Assembly (NCBI GenBank): GCA_010909165.1
Contig: MU008181.1
Span: forward strand, 434,001-498,000
From: Anthoceros angustus
Lineage: Eukaryota > Plantae > Anthocerotophyta
Length of the DNA stretch: 64,000 nucleotides
Direction: 5' to 3'
The position numbers were made by a program, and so were the translations under genes. Positions within the stretch are counted from its first letter, which is position 1, and every line of letters begins with the position of its first letter. Positions 523 through 39,638 of this stretch are shown piece by piece. The notes beneath the pieces were generated by a model. It worked only from the letters and a program-made list of their open reading frames with translations, made no database searches and was not told the origin of the DNA.

Positions 523-3187
523 TCATACGACCAGGTTTACGTCGCCCCCGGGATTGCACAACTTCCCCGCGACCTTCAGCATCTCATCCACCTCCACAAT
601 TTTCTCTCTCGGCTTTCCCTTCAAGCCTCCCAGTTCCCGCTCCTTTTCATCGATTTTAGCCCAATCTTGGAAGGAAATTGTTGCGGTGCCCTTTTCTTCT
701 AGAATGCTCTGCAAGCCCTGCCCTCCTCCTTTCAGAGGAAGGGGTTCTGAACCTAGCAAGCCTGTCTTATGGTCCTCCACAATAGCCTCGATCTGTAAGC
801 AAGAGTTCTCCTCTATTCAGATATCTCGAGATAAGTGGTCTGTAGATAAGAGAATGCCATAAGAGGGGTAAGACTTACCGTTTCCTCCGCACAAGTCAGG
901 TTGGTCCCGATGATCCCTGTGGGACCCCTCTTGAGCCAGCCAACCACATAAAGGCCGCCTTCAGTCGAGGTCTCATCCTTCTGATTGGCGAGCACTCGAC
1001 CAAAAACATTCGGGATGACCCCTGATGACAGCCACCATTCATTGCTTCAGCCACTGCCATTCATGCCAAGGAGCATAACTGCAAGCAGGCAGAAACAGGA
1101 AAGGACAGACAAACCTCGTTTTTCATCAAAAGGCACTCCAGCAACTGGTATGGACTTGTAGCCAATGCTCTTCAGCACCAGCCTAATCAGTACAGTCCTT
1201 GTGTTTAAGATTCCACATCATGGGCATCACAGTTGATTCGAAAAGAGAAGGAGAAATGAGAGACACAAGACGCACCCTGCTTTGATTTCTTCAAATTCTC
1301 CTGTACCAACCGCGATTTGGCCACCACCTTCGTGTCTCTCTGCCATTGACAGATAAAAATACTCAAAATCACCACAATGCATGCAACAACGAGGACAGGT
1401 ACATGTTAATATATGACGAAGACGGAATACTCACTGAGAACCGACTTCTCCAGGCTCACCCCGCCGACCCTTCGGCCATTACCTGAGGGGAGTATCACAT
1501 GTGGGGCTCTGAAAAACACGAAGTCAAGTTTCTTATCGACCTCTGATGCGTTCTTGTTGGCAGCAGCTTTGCAGAAAAGCTCGTATACACGCTTGTGGCT
1601 TCGACTGGCTTTCATCTCTGCCTGCAGGCAATAACACCGGCTGCACAGGCAGCCTTGATGTCAATTTCCAAGGCTGCCTTGCTACACATCCCTTGGAATA
1701 GTACCAAGGGCGGCAATCATGAGCAAGCAGAGGAAGAGGTCATTAGTGCACCGAGTCCATGGCAGAGGTAGATAAATCCTGCTCTTGTACATTCACCTCC
1801 AAGTCTTTCATTCCTTCAGTTCAACGTTTCCTACTGTGAGGATGTCAGCACATAAGAAATGTAAAAGTTCAGCATAATCACACAACATACACTAGGCGCA
1901 ATGACCAGAAGCAACACCGCATGCATTCCAGCTGATGGTCAGCACAGACGAATTACCAAGAAGCTCACGGAGCTCTTTGGCAGTGCAAGCAGCTTGAACA
2001 GGCCCTCGCCGTCCCACCAGATAGACATGCCTGCAGTTGTCAGAAAGGCCTAGTTAATAGGTCAACCCAAGGTGGTGTACTACGAGCCCATCACCTAAAT
2101 ACCTGATGTTGCTGTCTTTCAACGCAGCCAGTGCGTGATCAGCAATGTCCGTCACTTGTAGTTCACTTGTGGAGCGTAGAAGAATCCTTGCAGCATCCAA
2201 AGCAACATTTCCCTGTGCACCATCACGGTGAAGCGTCTGAAAGCAAGCAGCAAGATATCCCTGACAGAACGGTACGCTCATCAGGCAACTCACTTGTCCC
2301 AGGATAACTGCAGTGTCTGTGCTTTTGAGATCAGGTGCTAAATTTGCGGCGTCAGGATGGCCGTTGTACCACCAGACAAACTCCCTTGCAGCATGCACTC
2401 CCTGCAGGTTCTGTGAAGGTGGAAGGCAAAACAACAATGATTTCAGCACCGAGCACCCCTGCTCCACCGAGGACCAGCAGCAGCAAAAGAAACTGGGCAA
2501 TTGGGCATGAAGTCGTGGTCACCTCTCCTGGGATGCCGAGCGCCCTGTCGCTCTCCGCTCCATATGCAAGAACCACCTGCACCAATGAGCTGTGTGTAAG
2601 ACCAGGTTGAAGACATACAATGAGTCTCTTGCAATGTTGATGTCTGTGCCCCATGAGACATGCATACCACATGGTACAGCTCCCGTAGCTCCTGCAAAGT
2701 GATGTCTCTTCCAAGCGTCACGTTGCCGAAGTAAGAGCATCGGCTGTTTGTTGCCACCCTGCTGAATTGGTTGATGACTATCTGCATGAATCCAGCAGCC
2801 AAACAGCATGAAGCACTGTCTGAATATGAGCCACAGTAGGCTCCCGGGATCAATACCTTCGTTTCAGGATGGTCTGGAGCAACCCCGGATCGAACTAATC
2901 CGAAAGGCGTCGGCAGCCTCTCCACGATGTCCACGCTTGCCTTATCAAATCGTTTCAGCAGCTGCAGCAACCACCCACATTTCAGTCCTGCCCAAAATTG
3001 GCTCCAGTACGGGAATGAGGGGACCGAGCACGGGAGGAATCTGGGCACCTACCTTCTCGGCGGTGTAGAAGCCCGCAGGACCGCTGCCCACTACGCAGAT
3101 GTGCAGCTTGGAGTCAGAGCCATGCAGAGTGGAGAAGCTCCTGAGCGCCTGCACCCCGGCTCTGCTAACGAGGCCCAAGAACCGCAT
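523..3187 (-). CDS. MFDR: NADPH:adrenodoxin oxidoreductase (mitochondrial ferredoxin reductase), multi-exon
   Basis: Exon 1 (3187-3053) MRFLGLVSRAGVQALRSFSTL...HICVVGSGPAGFYTAEK gives a mitochondrial-type presequence plus the FAD-binding GxGPAG motif. Later exons read DIVERLPTPFGLVRSGVAPDHPETK, VVLAYGAESDRALGIPGE, FVWWYNGHPD, GQGNVALDAARILL, VYLVGRRGPVQAACTAKELRE and LYVVGWLKRGPTGIIGTN. GT-AG introns; stop at 523. Confidence 0.93.
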
Positions 3188-3448
3188 TCTGGCCAGCCTT
3201 GGATGCTCCGATCACCGTCCCGGAAGCATCGAGCCGGCCGCAGCGCGATGCAGCGCGGGCGTGCTCACAGCATCTAAATACTGTGCGAAGACAAGCAAAG
3301 GGGAAAGAAAGAAAATTTGGAGCAAGGGATGGAGGAACAGATGTGCGAGGAGCAATGGCGATGGCGATGGCTCTTTAAGAAGGAGAAACTTCAACAGCAG
3401 CAGCCTCCTGAGGTATGAGGCGCAGGAGCCGCAGCAGGTGGAGCGGCC

Positions 3449-6400
3449 ATGAGCCTGCGATGGGACCAGCTTGCGGCTTCCGCCAAGACGCTGGCAGTGG
3501 CCGCCGACAAGTGCTGCCGGTCTGATCGCAGGCGTGGGGTGGTCGTGGCTGCCGTCCGTGTTCGAGCTCGGGGAGATAGCAAGGACGAAAGGCTGGAATG
3601 CTCCAGCTGTGGGACTCCCAGGCGAGGCTCCAGGAGCAGGAGAGGCTGCAGTGGGAGGAAAGTGGGAGCTTTGCATCTCAGCCTGCCTGGGAGTTGTGTC
3701 AGGTGTGTCCCGATCGGAGAAGTTTTGGAATTTGGTTGATTGATTTGGGTGCATTTGGGAGAAGTGAGGACTTGAATTTTGGATCTTGGCGTGGGATTGT
3801 AGTGTGTCGCAAGGGTGATCTGGGTGTCACAATGTTTGAATCGATTGTTGCCATTTTGTTGCAGGCGGCAGAGAGCATGCTCCATGTCTTGGGTGGCAGG
3901 TTCTGTGTACTCTCTTGAAAGTCAAGGCAGCTCTCTGTTAGGAACGTACTTTTTTCAAGGTGCTTTGGGATGGCGGACATCAGCCAGACGTCAGCGGCTG
4001 TGGGCTGGTCCAAGGGTTTTTGTGTTTCGTGGTGTAGCATCATCCAGGTGTGTGGCACAGGGTCAGGCTGAGAATGGCAGATTTGGCAATGGAGCAGAGC
4101 TTGCCAGTGCGCCTGGACAGAGGGGGCTGGATGATGGCCATGTCAGAAGTCAAGTTGAATCTGGTGTGCATCATCACGGTGTTGATTCTGTGGGGCAGGA
4201 AGTGGGGAACAGTGTGCCCAGTCTACCAACTGGAAGCAATTGCAGGCCAAAAAAGAAGCAGCATACCTTCATTGTTTTCGACATTGAAACTACTGGGTTC
4301 AAGCGGGGTGACGACCGCATCATCGAATTTGCTGCTCGTGATTTAGCTGGTGGTGAGAACAGCACCTTGCAGACTTTAGTCAATCCCGAGGGAGTACCGG
4401 TGGGCAGCAGTTTTAACACTCACGGTATTTCTGACACGATGATCAACAATCCTGAGACCCCAAAGTGAGTCTGGGTGGGCCTGTTTCCTGATCCCTGACT
4501 TGGATGCAGTCTCTTTCTTGTGACGAGCTCGCTTCTCATGGTTGTGGATACCCTCAGGTGGGACGAGGTTGCCCCAACTATTGTGGAGTTCGTGGAGTCA
4601 CGTCGAAAGGGCAACGGACTTGTTCTATTGGTTGCGCACAATGCGAAAGTCTTTGATGTACCTTTCCTCATCAGCCACTTTGAGCGCAGTTCCGTGCAGC
4701 TGCCGAAGCACTGGCTTTTTCTGGACACCTTGCCTCTAGCAAAGGTTGTGATGGCTGCCAAAGGTATGATGACTGCCAGAAGTGAATGAAGTTCTGTAGC
4801 TATTTCAGGTTTACAGATGGGAATGTGTATGGATGGTGGAGTGAGAATGACGGCCGGTTCTGTTAGGAAGAGCTAGGCATTTAAGAGAGTTCCTCAGATG
4901 CTGAGAAGAGTCCTGAACCAAGGGGTCACTAATGCACAAAGATAAGTAAGATTAGATTCAGGGAGGAGGTCGCACGGCACAGTTGACCCACCTGGTTGTC
5001 ATAGTTGTTCATGTACAAAGGGTCTTGCTGGCTGTGAGGCTAAGAATCTGAAGTTCGAAAGTTCTGTCTTAGAGCCAAGAGAGCGGAACTTCGTACTTCT
5101 CTGGTACACAGCTAGCTGTCTGACCAGTTCTGCTGGCTTCATCTCCTGACATGTTGAATTGATGTAGTATCAGGTATTTGTGAATACTGATGAGGACCAA
5201 CATAAAGCACTTCCTTCTGTGCGTACAACATGTACGATTGTGTGTCTTGAGCTGTTTGATCTTTAGGTTGATTGTTTTCCATGTTTACCTCATGAACTGG
5301 ATTCGATTGTTCTTGCAGGCGGAAAAGGTGCAAACCTTAGTGCTCTCCGTGACTTCTACAGGTTGCCAGATGCTGGGCAAGCCCACAGGGGCCTGCCTGA
5401 TGTCAATGTCCTAGTTTCCGTGCTTCAACATCTTATGAGAGAACTTCAACTCACACCAAATGATTTGGTAGAGAGGGCGTTCAGAGCCAGTGATTGTAAG
5501 AAGCATTCACAGGGGAGAAGTACTGACGAAGGTACTAAGAGAGAAGAAGACTTCACAGCCTGCACCATCCCTGACACAAGTGACACAGAACTCTCGAGTG
5601 TAGTGGTCACGGACAAGGTGGTTCATTACACTGAAGAGGCTATAGACGAAATCAATGAGGAAGGCGGTAGCATGGCAGGTCCTGCCTCAGGAGATGACAT
5701 TTTTGAAGTCCAAACAGAAACTCTTGCTATATCCCTTGAACCTGGCCTGGTTCTGCAGCCTGTGTCACTAGAAGAAAAGAATCCAACTGGGCTTGACGGT
5801 AACGCAAGGGGGCATTTCTTCCTTGACGGTGCTGGGAATCAGAAACGTGGCCCAAGATTACCGAAAAGGAAAAGGGCATCCTGGTCCAACCACTCTCAAG
5901 ACACTGCTGTCACGCCAGATCACACTTACTCTGAGAGTCCGAGTTTGGGTGTGGGTGAATTCAGCCCGGACAAGAAAAAGTTTTTGGTAGCTATTCTGCC
6001 TCCCTCCAGTGATACTGAGATTTGGGGACTAGCATTCTGTGACATATCAACAGGTATACCCATGTGGCGTCTCTTATCTGCAGCAACTGTATTCAGAACA
6101 ATTGCATGCTCCTTTTATACTTGACTGAAATTGTCTCATGATTGGTTGCAAGTCCTCTAGACCAGTTAACACCCTGGTTTTATCTGTCAGGCGAATTCGG
6201 TGTCACTCATTCTCATGGTAGGCACACGTTGGTGCAGGAGATCCTACGTCTGCAACCATCAGAAATCATTCATCCTTCTGATGTATACTACCCTTTCAGC
6301 CTTGAGATTCATATTTCTCTTGACTTTAGTTGGAAGGGTTGTGAATTGATTGTTACATGTAACGATTGTGCCATGTATCTAACTCTTAGATCTGTGTCTG

Positions 6401-7558
6401 AAGCAGGTCCAGTGCTCGACACCTGAAACCAGTGGATGTGTATACCCCGCGGGCATGCCCCCACAGTTCTGTTATGCAGAGAGACCGAACTCTGACTTTT
6501 CCCCTAGCTCTGCAAGAAAGGTCAGGCTGACTGTCTGCCAGTTTATCTTTTTTATTTGGAGCACATCATGCTTGTGGTTGCTGAGATTGTGATCCAGGGA
6601 CAGGTTTTCTGACTTTTGTCTCTTTGGCATGGTGCAGAAGTTACTGGCACGTTTTGGAGTTGATTCTCTCGAAAGCTTGGGAAGGCAGGAAATTTATGGA
6701 TTGCGGGCAGCCGGTGGCCTTTTGAGGTAAACTTATATTTTGCTTTTACTGGTAAACACATGGTCTGGTGAATGTCGTTGTCTGAGCATCTATGTTAAAC
6801 TTATAATTGTTCAAGTACTTGTGTTCACAAGTATTTGATGCTTCTAACGGTCTTCCACATCCACATTCTAAATTTCATGTTCTGGTGTTGGATCCACACA
6901 GTTATTTGCAAGAAACTCAGAAAGTATCAAGTGGCAGTATCCCCCTTTGCACTCCTCATCCTTATTCTGTTGGTCATTTCATGCACATGGATGAGACTTT
7001 GCGAAGCATGGATCCACCAAAGTGGGATATCTGGTTTGGGAAGAGAAGCCACAAGGGAAGCCCCAATGGTGCAGTCCCCGAAGCAGTGAGCGATCACTCC
7101 CCTGATTCCGGTTCCTCAGAAGTTGAAGGCAACAAGGACCTGACTACTTTGGGGTTGGCAACCAGGGGCAGCACTTGTCAGTTCATGTCCCAGGAAGAGT
7201 TAGACAGTACTTGGAAACAGGTTCACGAATTCTTGCGCACCAAACCTGCTACTCAAGCACTGACAAAACAGAAGGTGAGTACTGACTGACTAAGTCCCTT
7301 GAATTCCATGTCCTTGACAATGAGCATTTGCAGAAAGCCAAGTCTCTCATGCACACACACACGTCTGTGCAGGGTTCTTTGGTTTCCATCTCAAAAACCT
7401 CTGAAAACCTGATAGTCTGCCTTGGTGCACCTGCCCTTTTTGTCAAAAAATTCCAGCAGCATGAGCATGCCACAGCTTTGCAGAGTGCATTCCAATCCGT
7501 CCTGCAGCAAGCTATGGAGCTCAACATCACCGTTGTTGGGGGACCGAGCGAACACTAG
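3449..7558 (+). CDS. Chimeric protein: organelle-type leader + DPD1-like DEDDh 3'-5' exonuclease + MutS1 connector domain + DnaX-like C-terminal domain (predicted 882 aa)
   Basis: Manually spliced exons 3449-3702, 3865-4464, 4558-4763, 5319-6053, 6191-6282, 6407-6520, 6638-6726, 6902-7274 and 7373-7558 are all GT-AG, phase-compatible and stop-free (2649 nt). ExoI VFDIETTG, ExoII VAHNAKVFD, ExoIII AHRGLPD. MutS-II-like WGLAFCDISTGEF..LVQEILRLQPSEI..PPQFCY..KLLARFGVDSLESLG..LRAAGGLLSYLQETQK. Confidence 0.85.
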
Positions 7559-8064
7559 GCCTACCACATTCTTTCAATAACCACACCTCTCTGGACTCCC
7601 AATTTCCCTGACCACAGAAACTGTTGCCACAGTATATTCGTATCCGAAGTCACTTTACTAGTGGTTACGTTGAGGTGACAAAAAGCGTGTCATGAAACCC
7701 TAGTCTAGTTTGGTGATCCGCACCAGAGTTGGAATCATTCGAACAAACGAACAGGACTTCAGTCGAGCGGAGTAGATCTCGGGCGTGACGACGCAAGATC
7801 CGCAAGTGCTGGGAATTTGAAACCAGGCGCAATCGGTTGCTGGCTTGCGTTTCAATTCGCGGGAGCTTGCATGGTACTCGTCTGTCCGTTGTGCGCGCAA
7901 GAGACCGAATCGCGCGTTTCTGCAAGTTTGCTCTCCAGCTGAAAGTCTTGCCGCTAGCGGAAGCTCCTTTCCGGAAGGCGTCCGGATTCTGGAGCTTCGT
8001 TTCATGAATACCTTCGGATCTGGTTGCCCGACATCGCTACCCAGTGTTATGTCACACAGCCAGA

Positions 8065-15096: not shown

Positions 15097-18000
15097 ATGG
15101 CCGAGTCTCGTGAAGCCGTTAAGGCGGCTTCCGCCACTTCCTGGAGTCATTGCCTCTCCTTGGCGCGCTCCTCCTCTTGCTGCTTTTACAGCTCGACCAA
15201 CTTTCCGGCCATGGACCGGAGTTCCGCCTCCGCCTTCCATAGGCGGATCAGCAGCTTGTGCTCCTCCTTCAAAGCCCTCTCCTGCCCTGCCAATTTCGCC
15301 TTCAAGGCCGCCATATCCTATTCCAGCCGTCCAGGCAACTCCACTCGACGCCTAGTGTCGTCCAGCTCTCTTTCCAGCTCGGCGACGTCCTGCTCCTTGC
15401 TGCGCCGACAGTCCTCCTCTACCCTCAAGCAGAACTGGAGTCGTTCTATCTCCCGCTCGTGATCTCCTATCAGCCCTTGAAGGAGTCCATTCCGCTCTTC
15501 CACTACTCGGAGTCGCAGCTCCAAAGTCTTCTTCTGGCCCTCCAACTCTTGGCGCTCTCCTTCCGATTCCTGGAGCTGCAGCCGGAGATCCCCCAACTCC
15601 TTGGCACTCGCTTCCATCTCCTCACCACGGGCCATTTATCTGTTCCTATCCCGACGGTAGTGATCCCTGTTGGTCTCGCCCCCTTCGACTGAGCCTCCAG
15701 CGCCTGGCTCTGCTCCTATCGGGCAGTCTTTGCCAATTCTTTGGCCCTCTCCGCCTGCCGACGTGCTCCCTCTGCTTCTTCCTTGGCCACTTCCCTTCTC
15801 CGGCAGAGGTCCTCCGCCCGCGCCTGTGAGCATGCTTCAGCTGTTCGCACAGCTGGAGCACCTTGGCCCTGTCTTGCTGGGCGGACCTGGCCTCCGTTTC
15901 GGCGGTACAGCGCTTCTCTTCCTCTACTCTAGCGAGGGACTCCGCCTTCCTCTTAGCAGCCTGTGCTGCCTCCGCCTGACCCTGGAGCACCACCATTCAT
16001 CTCCGGGTGGCCTCCACTTCTTAGGTCTTCTCTGCTGTCCCGCAAAGTCCCCAGAGCATGCCGTCCATGACAGCCGCCAAAACTCGCCGTGTCTCCTCCA
16101 CGGCCACCGCTGGCAAGACCCCCAAGAAGTTTGCTGAGGGCATAGGTGTCTCCCGGTCCGTTAAGGACCGCTATACCGCCGCCCGGAGTGAGTCCAGATT
16201 AGGGACTCCGGATCTAATCAGGACCCTTAGGTCCTGTCCGTCCTGAGCCGGCGCTTCCACCTCCTTGGCTCTTTTCGCCGCTAACTCTTTCTCTGGTCGT
16301 CTTCGCTTGGGGTCCGGGGAAGGTGAGGGGGTCCGGGAGCCGGCCTGCTTTCCCCTCCGCGTAGGGGACTGGATTGGCTCGGGGTGGGGTTGCTGCCATT
16401 GACCCCCAGCGCCTTGGGCGGTGGGATTGGGCGCCCGCCTCCACGGCCTCTTCCGCCTCCCCGCCACTCCGACGGGAAAGATAAAGGCACCGGAGCTGTC
16501 CTTGGGCGGTGGGATTGGGCGCCCGCCTCTTCTTTGCTTCCCTTACGGTCCGTCGGGGCTCGGCGGCAGTCCGGAGCATGTTGCGGGCGGTGGGCGTGAC
16601 CAACTCCATCCGTTGTAGTAGCTCACAGGGATGGCATTGCAGTGGGGGAACCAAGAGGAGGGAAGCAGGAATATCCTTCCATACTTCCCTTGGAGGAGAG
16701 GGAGTCCGCTCCAGACGTATGGAGTCCGGAACTCCCTCCCAGTCTTCGTCCTTCTGGGTGTGTCTCGCCTTAGGTGGGAGGCCATTCGGTTCCTGCGCTC
16801 TTTCCTCACGTTCTGCCTCCGGTGGGGTCGCTAGCCCCTTGGGGCGCGCTCTCCTTCCGATTCCCGGAGCAACGGGAGATCCCCAACTCCTTGGCACTCG
16901 CCCATCTCCTCACCACGGCCATTTATCTGCTCCTATCCCGACGTAGTGATCCTGTTGGTCTCGCCCCTCGACCGAGCCTCCGCCTCCACGGCCTCTTCCG
17001 CCTCCACGGCCTCTTCCGCCTCTTCTTTGGCCCTCTCCGCCGACGTGCTCCTCCGCTTCTTCCTTGGCCACTCTTCTCCAGAGGTCCTCCGCCCACCTGT
17101 GAGCATGCTTTCACTGCTCGCAATGGAGCACCTTGGCCCTGTCTTCTTTGGGCGGACTGGCCTCCGTTTGGTGCATGGCTTCTTCCTCTACTCTAGCGAG
17201 GGACTCCGCCTTCCTCTTAGCACTGTCGCCTCACTGACCTCGAGCACCACCATTCATCTCGGGGTGGCCTCCACTTAGGTCTTCTCTGTCCCAAGAAAGT
17301 CCCAGCATGCCGTCCATGACCCGCCAAAACTCGCCGTGTCTCCTCCACGGCCACCGCTGGCAAGACCCCCAAGAAGTTTGCTGAGGGCATAGGTGTCTCC
17401 CGGTCCGTTAAGGACCGCTATACCGCCGCCCGGAGTGAGTCCAGATTAGGGACTCCGGATCTAATCAGGACCCTTAGGTCCCGTCTGGCCCGAGCGCTGC
17501 CCACCTCCTTGGCTCTTTCGCTAACTCTTTCTCCGGTCGTCTTGGCTTGGGGTCCGGGAAGGTGAGGGTCCGGAGCTGCTTCCTCCGTAGGGACCGGATT
17601 GGCTCGGGGTGGGGTTGCGCCATTGACCCCAGCGCCTTGGGCGGTGGGATTGGGCGCCCGCCTCCACGGCCTCTTCCGCCTCCTGCCACTCCGACGGGAA
17701 AGATAAAGGCACCGGAGCTGTCCTTGGGGCGGTGGGATTGGGCGCCTGCCTCCTCTTCTTTGCTTCCCTTCTGGTCCGTCGGGGCTCGGCGGCTTGGTCC
17801 GGAGCATGTTGCGGGGCAGCTGGGGCGACGGCCACCAACTCCATCCCCGTTGTAGTAGCTCCTGGGGATGGCTGTTCTGGTGGGGGGAACCAAGAGGAGG
17901 GAAGCAGGAATATCCTTCCATACTTCCCTTGGAGGAGAGGGAGTCCGCTCCAGACGTATGGAGTCCGGAACTCCGCCTGGCCCTTCTGGGTGTGTCTCGC

Positions 18001-19100
18001 CTTAGGTGGGAGGCCATTCGGTTCCTGCGCTCTTTCCTCACGTTCTGCCTCCAGTAGGGTCGCTAGCCCCTTCCGGAGCGCTCGTTCCTCCTCCCCTTCC
18101 TTCAGAAGGTTGAGGTGCCCCCACATATGGACAATGAACAGAGACAACGCCGACGGGGTGGCCTCTCGTTCCTCAGCTTCCTCGACTCCTGAGCAATACG
18201 GGCGAAGATGATTCGCCCCCAGTTCGCCCTCTTGCCCCTCTGAAGGGCGTGTAGGAAGACCAACAGATTGTCACCAAGGTGGTCTACCTTGGTGAGCATG
18301 TTCCAGTGGACGATAATCTTCGCCACTGCCCTCACTCGTCAGTCCAGTAGGTCCGACATGAGCCATCCGTTGGAGGACCGCTGCGTCCCCGGCCTCAGGA
18401 GTGCCACCTTAGCGGCCTCCACCTTCTCCTTCACCTTTAGGGGCTCCGGTGCTACGCATCTCCTCTACTGGACGATCATCGACCACCCTAAGGACCTCCA
18501 CAATCCACCTCCTCTGGTTCTCCCGCAAGCTCTTAGAGCGGATAGATTTGGTGGCTGCCGCCAACATCTTTCGGGCGTATTCCTGGACCAACGCCATGCT
18601 GTTAAAGGTCCATACTGCCTGGAAAATGTCTAGGTGCCATTCCTGCACCATCTCCTCCGCCTCGGCCAGCCAGGGGCCGAAATCTGGGTAGCGCCTTGTG
18701 CTGATCCGTTGCTAAGGTATGGTGGGCAAGGATACTCCTGCCAAGTTTCGAAGTAATGAACGCACTGTTCGAAGGCGAAGACCACTCGGCGCTACGCTTA
18801 GGCGTCGGAAGAGAAGGCGCCAAGGAGCGGGATGTCTGAGCGCGAGCGATTGCAGGCTTCGAGAAGGCGGTCGAGAATGGCCTTCTCTCGGTCGGGCGTC
18901 GGAAGAGAAGGCGGTCGAGAATGGCCTTCTTGGGACTCGTCCATCCCTTTTCGCCCGATCGCCAGAGTCCTGCATCGTGTACACTGACTTTACGCCGCCG
19001 CCCTTCTGGGTCGTGGTTACCTGCATAAACCGACCGTTGACAACTCTGCGGTCCTGGTCCCCTGCATGCCCATCCTCCTCTCAGCACCGTACACGTGGCC
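15097..19100 (-). mobile_element. Degenerate TE-derived ORF region resembling the extra (non gag-pol) ORF of plant LTR retrotransposons, with coiled-coil end and about 1.25-kb internal tandem duplication
   Basis: Broken minus-strand frames: VWTFNSMALVQEY..., AKIIVHWNMLTKVDHLGDNLLVFLHALQRGKRANWGRIIFARI, then a heptad-rich coiled coil (15318-15635). Blocks of about 15580-16860 and 16865-18080 are diverged copies (shared strings at 15586/16875, 16204/17452, 16709/17949). No RT or integrase seen. Confidence 0.5.
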
Positions 19101-20841: not shown

Positions 20842-21002
20842 TTTTGGGTGGGTCAATTGCTTTTGGGTGGGTCAATTGCTTTTGGGTGGGTCAATTGCTT
20901 TTGGGTGGGTCAATTGCCTTTGGGTGGCTCAATTGCCTTTGGGTGGCTCAATTGCCTTTGGGTGGCTCAATTGCCTTTGGGTGGCTCAATTGCCTTTGGG
21001 TG
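20842..21002. repeat. 19-bp minisatellite, about 8.5 copies (4 of variant A, then 4 of variant B)
   Basis: ttttgggtgggtcaattgc x4 (20842-20917), ctttgggtggctcaattgc x4 (20918-20993), then a partial unit. Confidence 0.95.
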
Positions 21003-21340
21003 AGGGCGTTCCACCTAGTAACGGAACTGAACTCCAGAGTCTATCCAGTATTCCTTACTTAAGGCCGGGGGTGAGAGCGTTACCGTGGCGGAACTGGGCT
21101 CCGCAATGGGAGGGGTGAGGGCGTTACAGTGACGGAACTGGACTCCGCAGTCGGGAGGGGGGGTGAGGGCGTTACAGTTACGGAGCTGGACTCCGCAGTC
21201 TTTCCAACGTAACTGGCCCTCGCATTCTTTCCAACAGAATTGGACCCCGGAGTCTGTCCAACGGAACTGGACCACGCAGTCTTTCGAACGGGACTAGGCC
21301 TCACAGTCCTTTACGAACATGCCTGGACCCCACAGTATTT
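21000..21340. repeat. Degenerate tandem repeats: about 45-60-bp units followed by about 27-bp units sharing a core acggaactggactccgcagtc
   Basis: Four gtgagggcgtt..acggaactgg..ctcc units, then five tttccaac..actgg..cagtc-like units. Confidence 0.75.
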
Positions 21341-37423: not shown

Positions 37424-38063
37424 CTCCATTGTTCGCAGAGAAGACATGTACTTGACCAATGTCTTTCTTGTTCTACTCCTGACTCCTCGTCCTCCAGAGT
37501 CCTGGACGTGCGATTGGATGGACTCTCAGCTTTGAGTGAATCACGTACTTACATACATGATGCACTCAGTCTCTCATTGTGGCCATACTGATGCACATAT
37601 ACTTCTGAACCCAAAAGACATCCAAGTCTTTTTCAAGCATCTCATGATTGTGAATCACATGGCGGTCCAGGCTTGAGCTAGAATCACAGGGCGTGCCCTT
37701 ACACATTGTGTGTGAGACTTGTCATCTTGTGCCTTAAAATTGCGGAAGTCAGTTCTTTGCCTTGTGATGTATCGTATGTTATGGAGACCGGCCAGTGATA
37801 GGGACATGGATCATGCGACGTGCGACTGTCCATGGACCAAACGGTATCTCATGGACAGGGTGCTGAACACACTGCTCCAGTTTTATATCAGGATCTCGGA
37901 TGGGCTGTCATTGACGGTGACACTGACAATGCCACACTGTGTTTTCCTGGAAACTGCTGAATCTGGCATTGCATCGGCTGGTTATTGAATGGCAGGAGGT
38001 AGTAGAGCGATGTTGGTGAGCCCATGCCTTCCATGAGCGAGGAAGCAGGAGGGGCTGAAGACG

Positions 38064-39638
38064 ATGGCAGAGCAAAGCTCTCTCACGGCCACGTTGAGGA
38101 ACGTCCTGCTGTCTCGCCGGGCCAAGGTGTTATCAAACTCTGAGTCACCGGTTCAACCCAAATCTGGCCATGGGGTCTTCCCCGCTCCTACTTCTGCTCC
38201 TGCCGCCGGAGCTGAGCAGCACAAAGCCACTCTGGAGTACTTGGAAGACATGCTGTTGTGGACAGACGAGGATGACATGCGGCTGCATGAGTTGCTTGTA
38301 TATCAGACCCTGCACACAGAGCTGGCAGGAATTGTGGCCAAGGTTGAAGCTCTTTCTTTCCCTGGCATGTCTTTGACAACTTGTGGCGATGGCCAGATGC
38401 AGGTGCATGTGCAGGAACAGGAACAGGAGCAGGAGCAGGAGCAGGAGCACGAGTTTGGTGTTCCAGCTCGAGAGCACCCCGCGGCTGCTGAGCAAAGTTT
38501 GACGCTGGCGGGGGTGACGCAGATGCTGGTGGAGTGCGCTAGGGCCGTGGTTGCAGACGATGTGGAAACTGCAACCACGTCGGTGAGCAACCTAAGCAGA
38601 TATGCCGCGCCCTACGGCTCTAGCCTTCAGCGGATGACGTACTATGTGTTGGAGGCTTTGGTGGCCAAACTTCACGGCACAGGGGCAGATTTGTTTGCTG
38701 CCATTCGGAATGACCGACCGCATGGATTCCACCCGCAGAAGGTCTTTCAGATCATGCAATCCAAACTGCCGGCTCATGCTATGGCACATCAGTTTACCAA
38801 TTGTGTGTTTATGGACGCATTTGAAGGAGCAAGGAATGTGCACATCATCAGCTACGGCATCCTGAATGGACGGCAATGGCCTAGCTTGATGCGGGCTCTA
38901 GCTTGCCGTCCGGGAGGTGCTCCTCGGCTGCGGATCACTGGCATAGAGTTCCCCCAGCCCGGCCTAGAGCCGGATGAGGGGCTGGTGGCAACAGGGCACA
39001 GGCTGCAGGAGTATGCAAACAGTCTCGGCCTGGAATTCCTATTCCGAGGGTTTGCAGCCAAGTGGGAAGATGTTCAGGTGTCCTCGTTAGGTCTGCAACG
39101 AGACGAGGTTCTTGCTGTGTGCTGCATATACCGCCTCCGACATCTGTTGGATGATAGCGTCCTGCCTTCCAACCCCAGAATGACTGTGCTGGAGAGGATT
39201 TGCAATATGAACCCAATGGTTTTCGTCACAGGTTTTCTCAGCGTCGCAGTCAACACACCCTTCTTGACCTCCAGGGTCTCCGGGCTTCTTCCTTTCGCAA
39301 ATGGCGTCTATGAAGCGTACGGATGCACAATGCATGACCTTCCGGAAGAGCGACTGTTTCTTGAGAAGCATACAGGTCGTGACATCCTCAACATCCTAGC
39401 CTGCGAGGGATGCGAAAGACTGGAACGGTTCGAGGCTTACTATCAGTGGCATCGTCGGCTTCAGAGTGCTGGTTTTCAGATTGTTCCGTTGGAAGAAAGC
39501 TGGTACGCGAATGCGGGACAAGTTCTCAGGGAGTACCATGAGAACTTCACAATAGGCCATGACAGGGGATGGATCATTGGTGGTTGGAAAGAGACAGTGC
39601 TGTACGCCATGGCAGCATGGGAGCCAATACCCTTGTAA
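38064..39638 (+). CDS. GRAS transcription regulator, LISCL (SCL9/SCL14-like) type, intronless, 524 aa
   Basis: LISCL-like N-terminal LEYLEDMLL motif; LHRI MLVECARAV; VHIISYGILNGRQWPSLMRALACRPGGAPRLRITGIEFPQPG; LRHLLDDSV..NPRMTVLERI; NILACEG.ERLER; GWKETVLYAMAAW. Confidence 0.92.
   Translation: MAEQSSLTATLRNVLLSRRAKVLSNSESPVQPKSGHGVFPAPTSAPAAGAEQHKATLEYLEDMLLWTDEDDMRLHELLVYQTLHTELAGIVAKVEALSFPGMSLTTCGDGQMQVHVQEQEQEQEQEQEHEFGVPAREHPAAAEQSLTLAGVTQMLVECARAVVADDVETATTSVSNLSRYAAPYGSSLQRMTYYVLEALVAKLHGTGADLFAAIRNDRPHGFHPQKVFQIMQSKLPAHAMAHQFTNCVFMDAFEGARNVHIISYGILNGRQWPSLMRALACRPGGAPRLRITGIEFPQPGLEPDEGLVATGHRLQEYANSLGLEFLFRGFAAKWEDVQVSSLGLQRDEVLAVCCIYRLRHLLDDSVLPSNPRMTVLERICNMNPMVFVTGFLSVAVNTPFLTSRVSGLLPFANGVYEAYGCTMHDLPEERLFLEKHTGRDILNILACEGCERLERFEAYYQWHRRLQSAGFQIVPLEESWYANAGQVLREYHENFTIGHDRGWIIGGWKETVLYAMAAWEPIPL

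Follow-up and report, generated by a model that had tools for sequence, protein, structure and literature searches.

Plant DPD1-MutS1 fusion proteins were described in Plant Cell in 2024 (PMC12292046), in an article which calls for genetic and biochemical work on them. A search of its text by term found neither STICHEL nor DnaX, the passages with the term C-terminal concern other proteins, and the C-terminal tail that is the subject of the present analysis is not mentioned. A stretch of 64,000 nucleotides from Anthoceros angustus (contig MU008181.1) was analysed here; this whole stretch is referred to as the window, and all positions are counted from its first nucleotide. The window gene at 3449-7558 (+) belongs to the same lineage as plant DPD1-MutS1, as judged by its DPD1-type exonuclease, its MutS domain II and the same tail. 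Plant DPD1-MutS1 has the full MutS1 core of domains I-V, whereas the window protein is without domain I, most of domain III, domain IV and domain V.

Domains comparable to the tail are found at different places in other described proteins. In STICHEL the C-terminal domain (PF23007) is located behind a DnaX-type AAA+ module, while in the window protein it stands behind a DEDDh exonuclease and MutS domains. DnaX (tau) of the cyanobacterial type contains a clamp-loader ATPase, which the window gene does not encode, and domain I of DnaA is located at the N-terminus of its protein but the MutS1 tail at the C-terminus. The N-terminal domains of DnaA and DciA and domain V of DnaX share one type II KH-like fold (PMC8216460). 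A literature search for STICHEL together with DnaX and for PRK14948 revealed nothing relevant.

The PF23007 family, the fold class and the DPD1-MutS1 fusion are already known. Our analysis adds that the tail is a constant, intron-marked part of land-plant DPD1-MutS1, is of the cyanobacterial DnaX / STICHEL type, and survives in the window gene in a natural minimal form. We consider it likely that 7188-7555 (+) encodes the C-terminal domain of plant DPD1-MutS1, that this domain is of the PF23007 (STICHEL) / cyanobacterial-type DnaX (tau) type with a DnaA-domain-I-like fold, and we infer for it a role in docking or self-association. The direct basis is the window sequence and its splicing, the conservation in orthologs, the family membership of the ortholog tails and a fold model of an ortholog tail.

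A conserved C-terminal domain divided by an intron

The tail comprises about 90 residues, which are encoded by 7188-7274 and 7373-7555 (+) and extend up to the stop codon TAG read from the sequence at 7556-7558. Its first part (7188-7274, +) forms the 3′ end of exon 8, covers helices 1 and 2 with the pattern L..xW..V...L...PAT.AL..QK and aligns with all orthologs; the frame of exon 8 reads EELDSTWKQVHEFLRTKPATQALTKQK up to the codon AAG at 7272-7274, which is followed by GTGAGT. A phase-0 GT..AG intron (7275-7372, +) divides the domain after QK and before G. Downstream of CAG (7370-7372) the last exon continues in the same phase from GGT at 7373 with the peptide GSLVSISK...ITVVGGPSEH. This second part (7373-7555, +) comprises strand 1, strand 2, helix 3, helix 4 and strand 3 and includes a nearly invariant block, LFVKKFQQHEHA, at about 7430-7465 (+). 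The joint of the last intron (7272->7371, cut +2) was seen in three sequencing runs, namely in contig X1, which stems from a run of the same organism, and in contigs X2 and X6 from two related organisms (about 92-97% alike). An earlier reading of the sequence alone had quoted the peptide of these two exons, and it is indeed present in the frame named there, its junction being confirmed by the spliced contigs.

A phmmer search with the 61 residues of the last exon against 1.84 billion representative proteins resulted in eight matches (E 1.8e-10 to 3.9e-5), all at extreme C-termini. The named ones are proteins of Selaginella moellendorffii (1208 amino acids), Riccia sorocarpa (1864 amino acids) and Diphasiastrum complanatum, with E values of 1e-7 to 1e-10; the others are unnamed transcriptome proteins. 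A protein of Marchantia polymorpha (1918 amino acids) with the same C-terminal tail was added by a word search, which covered proteins of 0.55-1.75 times the query length. Starting from the Diphasiastrum and Riccia tails, this word search returned only the queries themselves and Marchantia, and no STICHEL or DnaX sequences were reached within that range. In the long phmmer matches Pfam recognized RNase_T and all five MutS domains (I to V), with PF23007 as the last domain, and a weak PF23007 flag was already present on the Selaginella protein in precomputed Pfam data. The sequence-only reading had asked for a check of plant MutS1 proteins for this tail, and it is present in those of Selaginella, Riccia, Diphasiastrum and Marchantia.

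Throughout this study the window tail was searched as two separate exon pieces, and the scores given for the fold and for the full-domain families are those of ortholog tails. A hidden Markov model (HMM) was built from six ortholog tails with the window excluded. It scored 31.0 bits on the exon 8 piece (HMM positions 3-31) and 78.2 bits on the last exon (HMM positions 32-87), whereas the highest score among 2032 other stop-to-stop pieces in the window was 4.7 bits. The match of the window tail to the ortholog tails lies far beyond chance. Both window pieces align without gaps to the orthologs according to the pattern L..xW..V...LQ..PAT.AL..QKG.L.SI......V..gaSaLFVKKFxQHEHA.ALE.AF..VL..Pv.L.I, in which the block LFVKKFxQHEH..ALE.AF..VL is nearly invariant among the orthologs. 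Compared with the two relatives, 14/265 and 14/354 substitutions were counted in the tail region versus 48/601 and 46/658 in the linker exons, and the tail coding region shows no indels.

Selaginella, Marchantia and the window share the position of the tail intron (QK/G). This shared position and the conservation in orthologs mark the tail as an old and fixed part of the gene. As liverworts and lycophytes have the tail with an intron at the same place, the tail has been present in the gene since at least the common land-plant ancestor of these groups. It is not peculiar to this gene; in liverworts and lycophytes full-length DPD1-MutS1 normally ends with this conserved domain.

The whole gene consists of nine exons with 882 codons, located at 3449-3702, 3865-4464, 4558-4763, 5319-6053, 6191-6282, 6407-6520, 6638-6726, 6902-7274 and 7373-7558 (+). 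The exon borders were taken from contig X1 and are all of the GT..AG type. These nine exons reproduce the 882-codon model put forward from the sequence alone. X1 shows 0 differences to the window over 2.8 kb and skips eight GT..AG introns. It therefore represents spliced RNA, although the runs carry no RNA label on record. The encoded protein starts with a presequence-like N-terminal region, followed by a DEDDh (DPD1-type) exonuclease, MutS domain II together with the initial residues of domain III, a linker and, at the C-terminus, the tail. Pfam matched RNase_T (exons 2 and 3) and MutS_II on the exon pieces, and neither an AAA+ nor a DNA_pol3 domain was found on the gene pieces with Pfam and NCBIfam. 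The DEDDh motifs FDIETTG, HNAKVFDVPF and AHRGLPD (catalytic D, E, D, H, D) are present in the translation. Exon-by-exon blastp comparison of the window gene with Selaginella, Riccia, Marchantia and others yielded 50-66% identity, the exonuclease part showing 52-66% identity to ortholog exonucleases. The linker between the deletion junction (7007|7008, see below) and the tail (7008-7187, +) is poorly conserved and gave no family matches in Pfam. The 3′ untranslated region extends from 7559 to 7668 (+), where record 1 of X1 stops, and it contains the only indels against the relatives in the 3′ part of the gene (7559, 7602 and 7654).

Relationship of the tail to STICHEL, DnaX and DnaA

When isolated, five ortholog tails scored 36.7, 29.2, 28.9, 27.9 and 30.2 bits against PF23007 ('STICHEL, DnaA_N-like alpha-beta domain') and thus all exceeded the cut-off of 27 of this family. 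Four of the five also matched the NCBIfam model NF011510 (DNA polymerase III subunit gamma/tau) at positions 441-521 of 640 with E values of 1.5e-6 to 1.8e-5, and weaker matches were obtained with the other DnaX models PRK05563 and PRK14965. These results bear out the likeness to the C-terminal domains of DnaX and STICHEL that the sequence-only reading had proposed. Together with the presence of the tail on plant MutS1 orthologs they also uphold its view of a protein made up of a DEDDh exonuclease, a MutS piece and a DnaX-type tail. By the Pfam cut-off the ortholog tails belong to the same family as the STICHEL C-terminal domain; both stand at the extreme C-terminus of their proteins and, going by the family name of PF23007, have the same helix-helix-strand-strand-helix-helix-strand fold. 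The MutS1-type tails differ from STICHEL by their own invariant block LFVKKFxQHEH.

For comparison with cyanobacteria four DnaX proteins from dnaX genes on cyanobacterial plasmids were used. NF011510 was the top model for two cyanobacterial DnaX proteins, with 594 and 469 bits versus 409 and 376 bits for the next model, and therefore represents a cyanobacterial-type DnaX model. In two of the four proteins (Leptolyngbya boryana and Leptolyngbya sp. BL0902) PF23007 is located C-terminally, directly after domain III (DNA_pol3_gamma3), with sub-threshold scores of 18.9 and 21.2 bits. This module after domain III is the region of cyanobacterial-type DnaX to which the ortholog tails match, and the alignments are colinear. 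NF011510 continues for about 120 positions beyond the module, whereas the window tail has 5-10 residues beyond its last strand.

Single-sequence comparisons are weak, the fold is a common one, and middling Z scores are frequent with it, so that the likeness to DnaX and STICHEL might in principle be due to chance or exist at the level of the fold only. Nevertheless, five independent ortholog tails lie above the curated PF23007 cut-off, four tails match the same region of the cyanobacterial-type DnaX model, and the alignments span the domain from end to end. We regard an explanation by chance or by fold alone as highly improbable.

One genome per bacterial and archaeal species was searched with the MutS1-type tail motif, derived from a liverwort-only alignment. 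The 72 pattern matches in bacterial genomes included no relative, and according to this the MutS1-type tail is a plant subfamily and not a recent bacterial import. The motif F-x-Q-H-E-H is nearly invariant in the MutS1-type tails and specific to them, being absent from the C-termini of the two cyanobacterial DnaX proteins. A partner contact or a metal site are candidate roles of this motif.

The fold was modelled by AlphaFold for the Selaginella tail, which is 59% identical to the last exon of the window, with the ortholog alignment as input. The model (predicted local distance difference test score, pLDDT, 78) shows the order helix, helix, strand, strand, helix, helix, strand. In an exhaustive structural search its best match was domain I of Bacillus subtilis DnaA (4TPS chain D; Z 10.9, root mean square deviation (rmsd) 2.2 Å, 80 residues), which was also ranked first by Foldseek. 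Further matches were domain I of DnaA from Helicobacter pylori (2WP0, Z 8.0) and Escherichia coli (2E0G, Z 6.5), DciA (7YKM, Z 6.8), residues 518-592 of E. coli tau in the polymerase complex (5FKU chain E, Z 6.7), and the type II KH domains of Era, Der, S3 and RbfA (Z about 6-7.6). The structural comparison suggested by the sequence-only reading thus places DnaA domain I first, with DciA and domain V of E. coli tau matched as well. Domain V of tau (5FKU chain E, 2AYA) and the N-terminal domain of DciA (7YKM, 8A3V) have the same type II KH-like fold as the modelled tail (Z 6.7, 6.8 and 6.2), but tau domain V is without sequence similarity to the tails. A shape search in the ESM Atlas returned DnaA N-termini and one DnaX family (template modelling (TM) score 0.81, rmsd 1.3), and feature searches there pointed to clusters of DnaA_N, PF23007, DnaX_C and tau_5, which are to be taken as leads only. 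From the model, the tail is predicted to form a domain of about 85 residues with a DnaA-domain-I-like (type II KH-like) fold.

Since DnaA domain I provides the best structural matches, with Z scores of 10.9 and 8.0, and the ESM Atlas features of the last exon lead to DnaA_N clusters, the tail could also descend directly from the N-terminal domain of DnaA and not from a DnaX/STICHEL C-terminal module. In a colinear MAFFT alignment of the tails with domain I of E. coli DnaA, the invariant W of helix 1 falls opposite W6, PAT of the turn opposite PAT, and the two F of LFVKKF in helix 3 correspond to F46 and W50. In hhalign the two show a local match of 17 columns with E 0.017, the probability being only 2.6%. 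As hhalign backs just the first 17 columns, the MAFFT superposition is suggestive only. Moreover, there is no significant sequence match of DnaA domain I to the tails: the DnaA_N family (PF11638) gave none even at E≤10, compared with 27.9-36.7 bits for PF23007 and E 1e-6 for NF011510, and the position of E21 in E. coli is variable in the tails. Direct descent from DnaA is thus improbable in our view. Since the DnaA_N and DnaX/STICHEL families may form one superfamily, this alternative touches the immediate donor only. The most likely origin would be a DnaX/STICHEL-type C-terminal module of cyanobacterial descent, which was joined to the cyanobacterium-derived MutS1. Such a module represents a third cyanobacterium-derived piece of replication or repair tied to DPD1-MutS1, and it gives the little-understood C-terminal domain of STICHEL a second context in plants.

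As an observation aside, plasmids of Leptolyngbya, Anabaena and Brasilonema bear their own dnaN-dnaX clusters (plus holA or a DNA polymerase gene), and among these short plasmid copies of DnaX the PF23007-type C-terminal module is kept only in some.

Loss of the MutS core and the role of the tail

In the region of MutS domain I the 6 nt of the window at 5975-5980 correspond to 435 nt in the transcripts of the two relatives. Between 7007 and 7008 these transcripts contain additional mRNA of about 2.8 kb, which matches MutS domains III-V. Both deletions in the window are in frame, with a net loss of 429 nt and about 2811 nt. When mapped on the full-length ortholog P0005, residues of MutS domain I and about residues 1031-1665 are missing from the window protein. 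No second contig with a likeness of 90% or more was found for X1, and no missing MutS exons were seen downstream (7.5-22 kb) when the list of open reading frames (ORFs) was read by eye, without an HMM scan. X1 reveals that the organism of the window transcribes the shortened gene and splices it correctly. Mismatch sensor and ATPase have been dropped there, whereas exonuclease, connector and tail are retained. Being internally deleted and yet expressed, this form is a natural experiment that bears on the question of which protein parts can be dispensed with.

Given the absence of the MutS domain I region and of about 2.8 kb for domains III-V, with MutS_II being the sole MutS domain seen by Pfam, the tail in this organism might be a functionless leftover in a gene that decays after loss of its MutS core. 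The frame of 882 codons is, however, intact across eight introns, neither deletion disturbs it, and a run of the same organism contains the spliced transcript. Furthermore, the DEDDh motifs are kept, the tail is free of indels against the relatives, and it scores 78 and 31 bits with the ortholog HMM. A functionless tail appears unlikely against this background.

With regard to a functional tail, proteins with this fold in bacteria serve in dimerisation and in binding of DnaB, DiaA and SirA (DnaA), in binding of DnaB (DciA), and in binding of the alpha subunit of DNA polymerase III (tau). By analogy the tail may, with about an even chance, act as a module for protein-protein docking or self-association. 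It would then tether the exonuclease-MutS protein to a partner at the organellar DNA via the conserved face of helix 3 and helix 4 (LFVKKFxQHEH). The proposal of the sequence-only reading, according to which the nuclease might be docked on an organellar replication partner, would be a reasonable form of this role. In DnaA, helix 1 of domain I (W6) forms a dimer, and the face of helix 2 and helix 3 (E21, N44, F46, W50) binds DnaB, DiaA and other regulators, together with weak binding of single-stranded DNA (ssDNA) (PMC5448010). Docking or self-association is favoured because the LFVKKFxQHEH block (helix 3 and the turn into helix 4) corresponds to the partner-binding face of DnaA domain I and to the GXXG site of KH domains, with GXXG itself absent.

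The same fold would also allow the tail to bind single-stranded nucleic acid in the manner of KH domains and so to help the exonuclease to hold its DNA substrate. The structural matches to Era, Der, ribosomal protein S3 and RbfA (Z 6-7.6) are in accordance with this, as are the two lysines in the conserved block. In addition, weak binding of ssDNA is described for domain I of E. coli DnaA (PMC5448010), and the DUF721 domain of DciA is reported as an ssDNA binder (PMC12547741). Nevertheless, the GXXG loop of nucleic-acid-binding KH domains is absent from the tails: the connection of helix 3 and helix 4 reads Q-Q-H-E-H in nearly all of them and contains no glycine. The nearest structural relatives (DnaA domain I, tau domain V and DciA) are, moreover, mainly protein-binding modules. 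Binding of ssDNA is therefore a second choice after docking or self-association, and as the actual function of the tail we hold it to be rather doubtful.

Several points weigh against the assignment of the window tail to the DnaX/STICHEL type and against its role in docking. Scored as separate pieces, the last exon alone reached 15.9 bits with PF23007 (E 0.015, profile positions 34-85 of 86), which is below the cut-off of 27 bits, and the exon 8 piece of 31 residues gave no match to this family. The last exon alone found no NCBIfam model at E≤1, and a sequence search of the PDB with the tail profile returned nothing at E≤10. In hhalign the tail profile aligned colinearly but weakly with the two Leptolyngbya C-termini (66 and 76 columns, E 0.03 and 0.015), and no sequence match to domain V of E. 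coli tau was obtained. The tail ends only about 5-10 residues beyond its last strand and so lacks a counterpart to the unstructured peptide with which E. coli tau binds alpha. DnaB and the alpha subunit of DNA polymerase III, the bacterial partners of this fold, are not known in land-plant organelles, and the partner can thus not be carried over from bacteria. Finally, with the MutS core deleted in this organism, the gene could be decaying.

For a tail of the DnaX/STICHEL type a further-reading proposal can be made, which we consider speculative and hardly probable at present. The tail would bring the DPD1 exonuclease to its organellar site of action, as surviving wiring of the endosymbiont replisome, and the tail and the MutS connector would suffice for a job that is independent of mismatches. 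If true, this would explain why the mismatch sensor and the ATPase were lost in frame while the exonuclease, the connector and the tail are kept and transcribed, and the functional core of plant DPD1-MutS1 would be defined by the window gene as a naturally occurring minimal version. More generally, the tail belongs to a family which in bacteria links DnaA, DciA and tau to a helicase or polymerase, and it thereby provides a testable handle on DPD1-MutS1 with respect to partner, self-association and nucleoid targeting.

Neighbouring genes and repeats in the window

An intron-containing gene at about 900-3190 (-) is arranged head to head with the DPD1-MutS1 gene. One of its exons reads HICVVGSGPAGFYTAEK, and the GxGxxG dinucleotide-binding motif in this exon suggests an FAD/NAD(P) oxidoreductase, a prediction made from the translated exon. 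Two raw ORF fragments of this minus-strand gene gave no matches in Pfam. Contig X1 extends 2.1 kb upstream of 3400, so that the transcripts of both genes may overlap or may be bridged by this contig.

An uninterrupted open frame of 533 codons at 38037-39635 (+) encodes a transcription factor with a GRAS domain (PF03514, E 1.5e-85), which is in accordance with the genome of a land plant or a close streptophyte. Between 16200 and 18150 (-/+), in a region with a content of G and C of 63%, near-duplicate long ORFs are found on both strands, e.g. MRKERRNRMASHLRRDTPRR at 16543-16809 and again at 17418-18041. ORF fragments of this repeat region at 16-18 kb gave no matches in Pfam, and it looks like a tandem duplication or a repeat element. 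Furthermore, mechanically derived ORFs at 20844-21118 (+) contain short tandem repeats at the peptide level, with GGSIAFGWLNCLWVAQLPL occurring several times, and this segment is probably a tandem repeat of the DNA.

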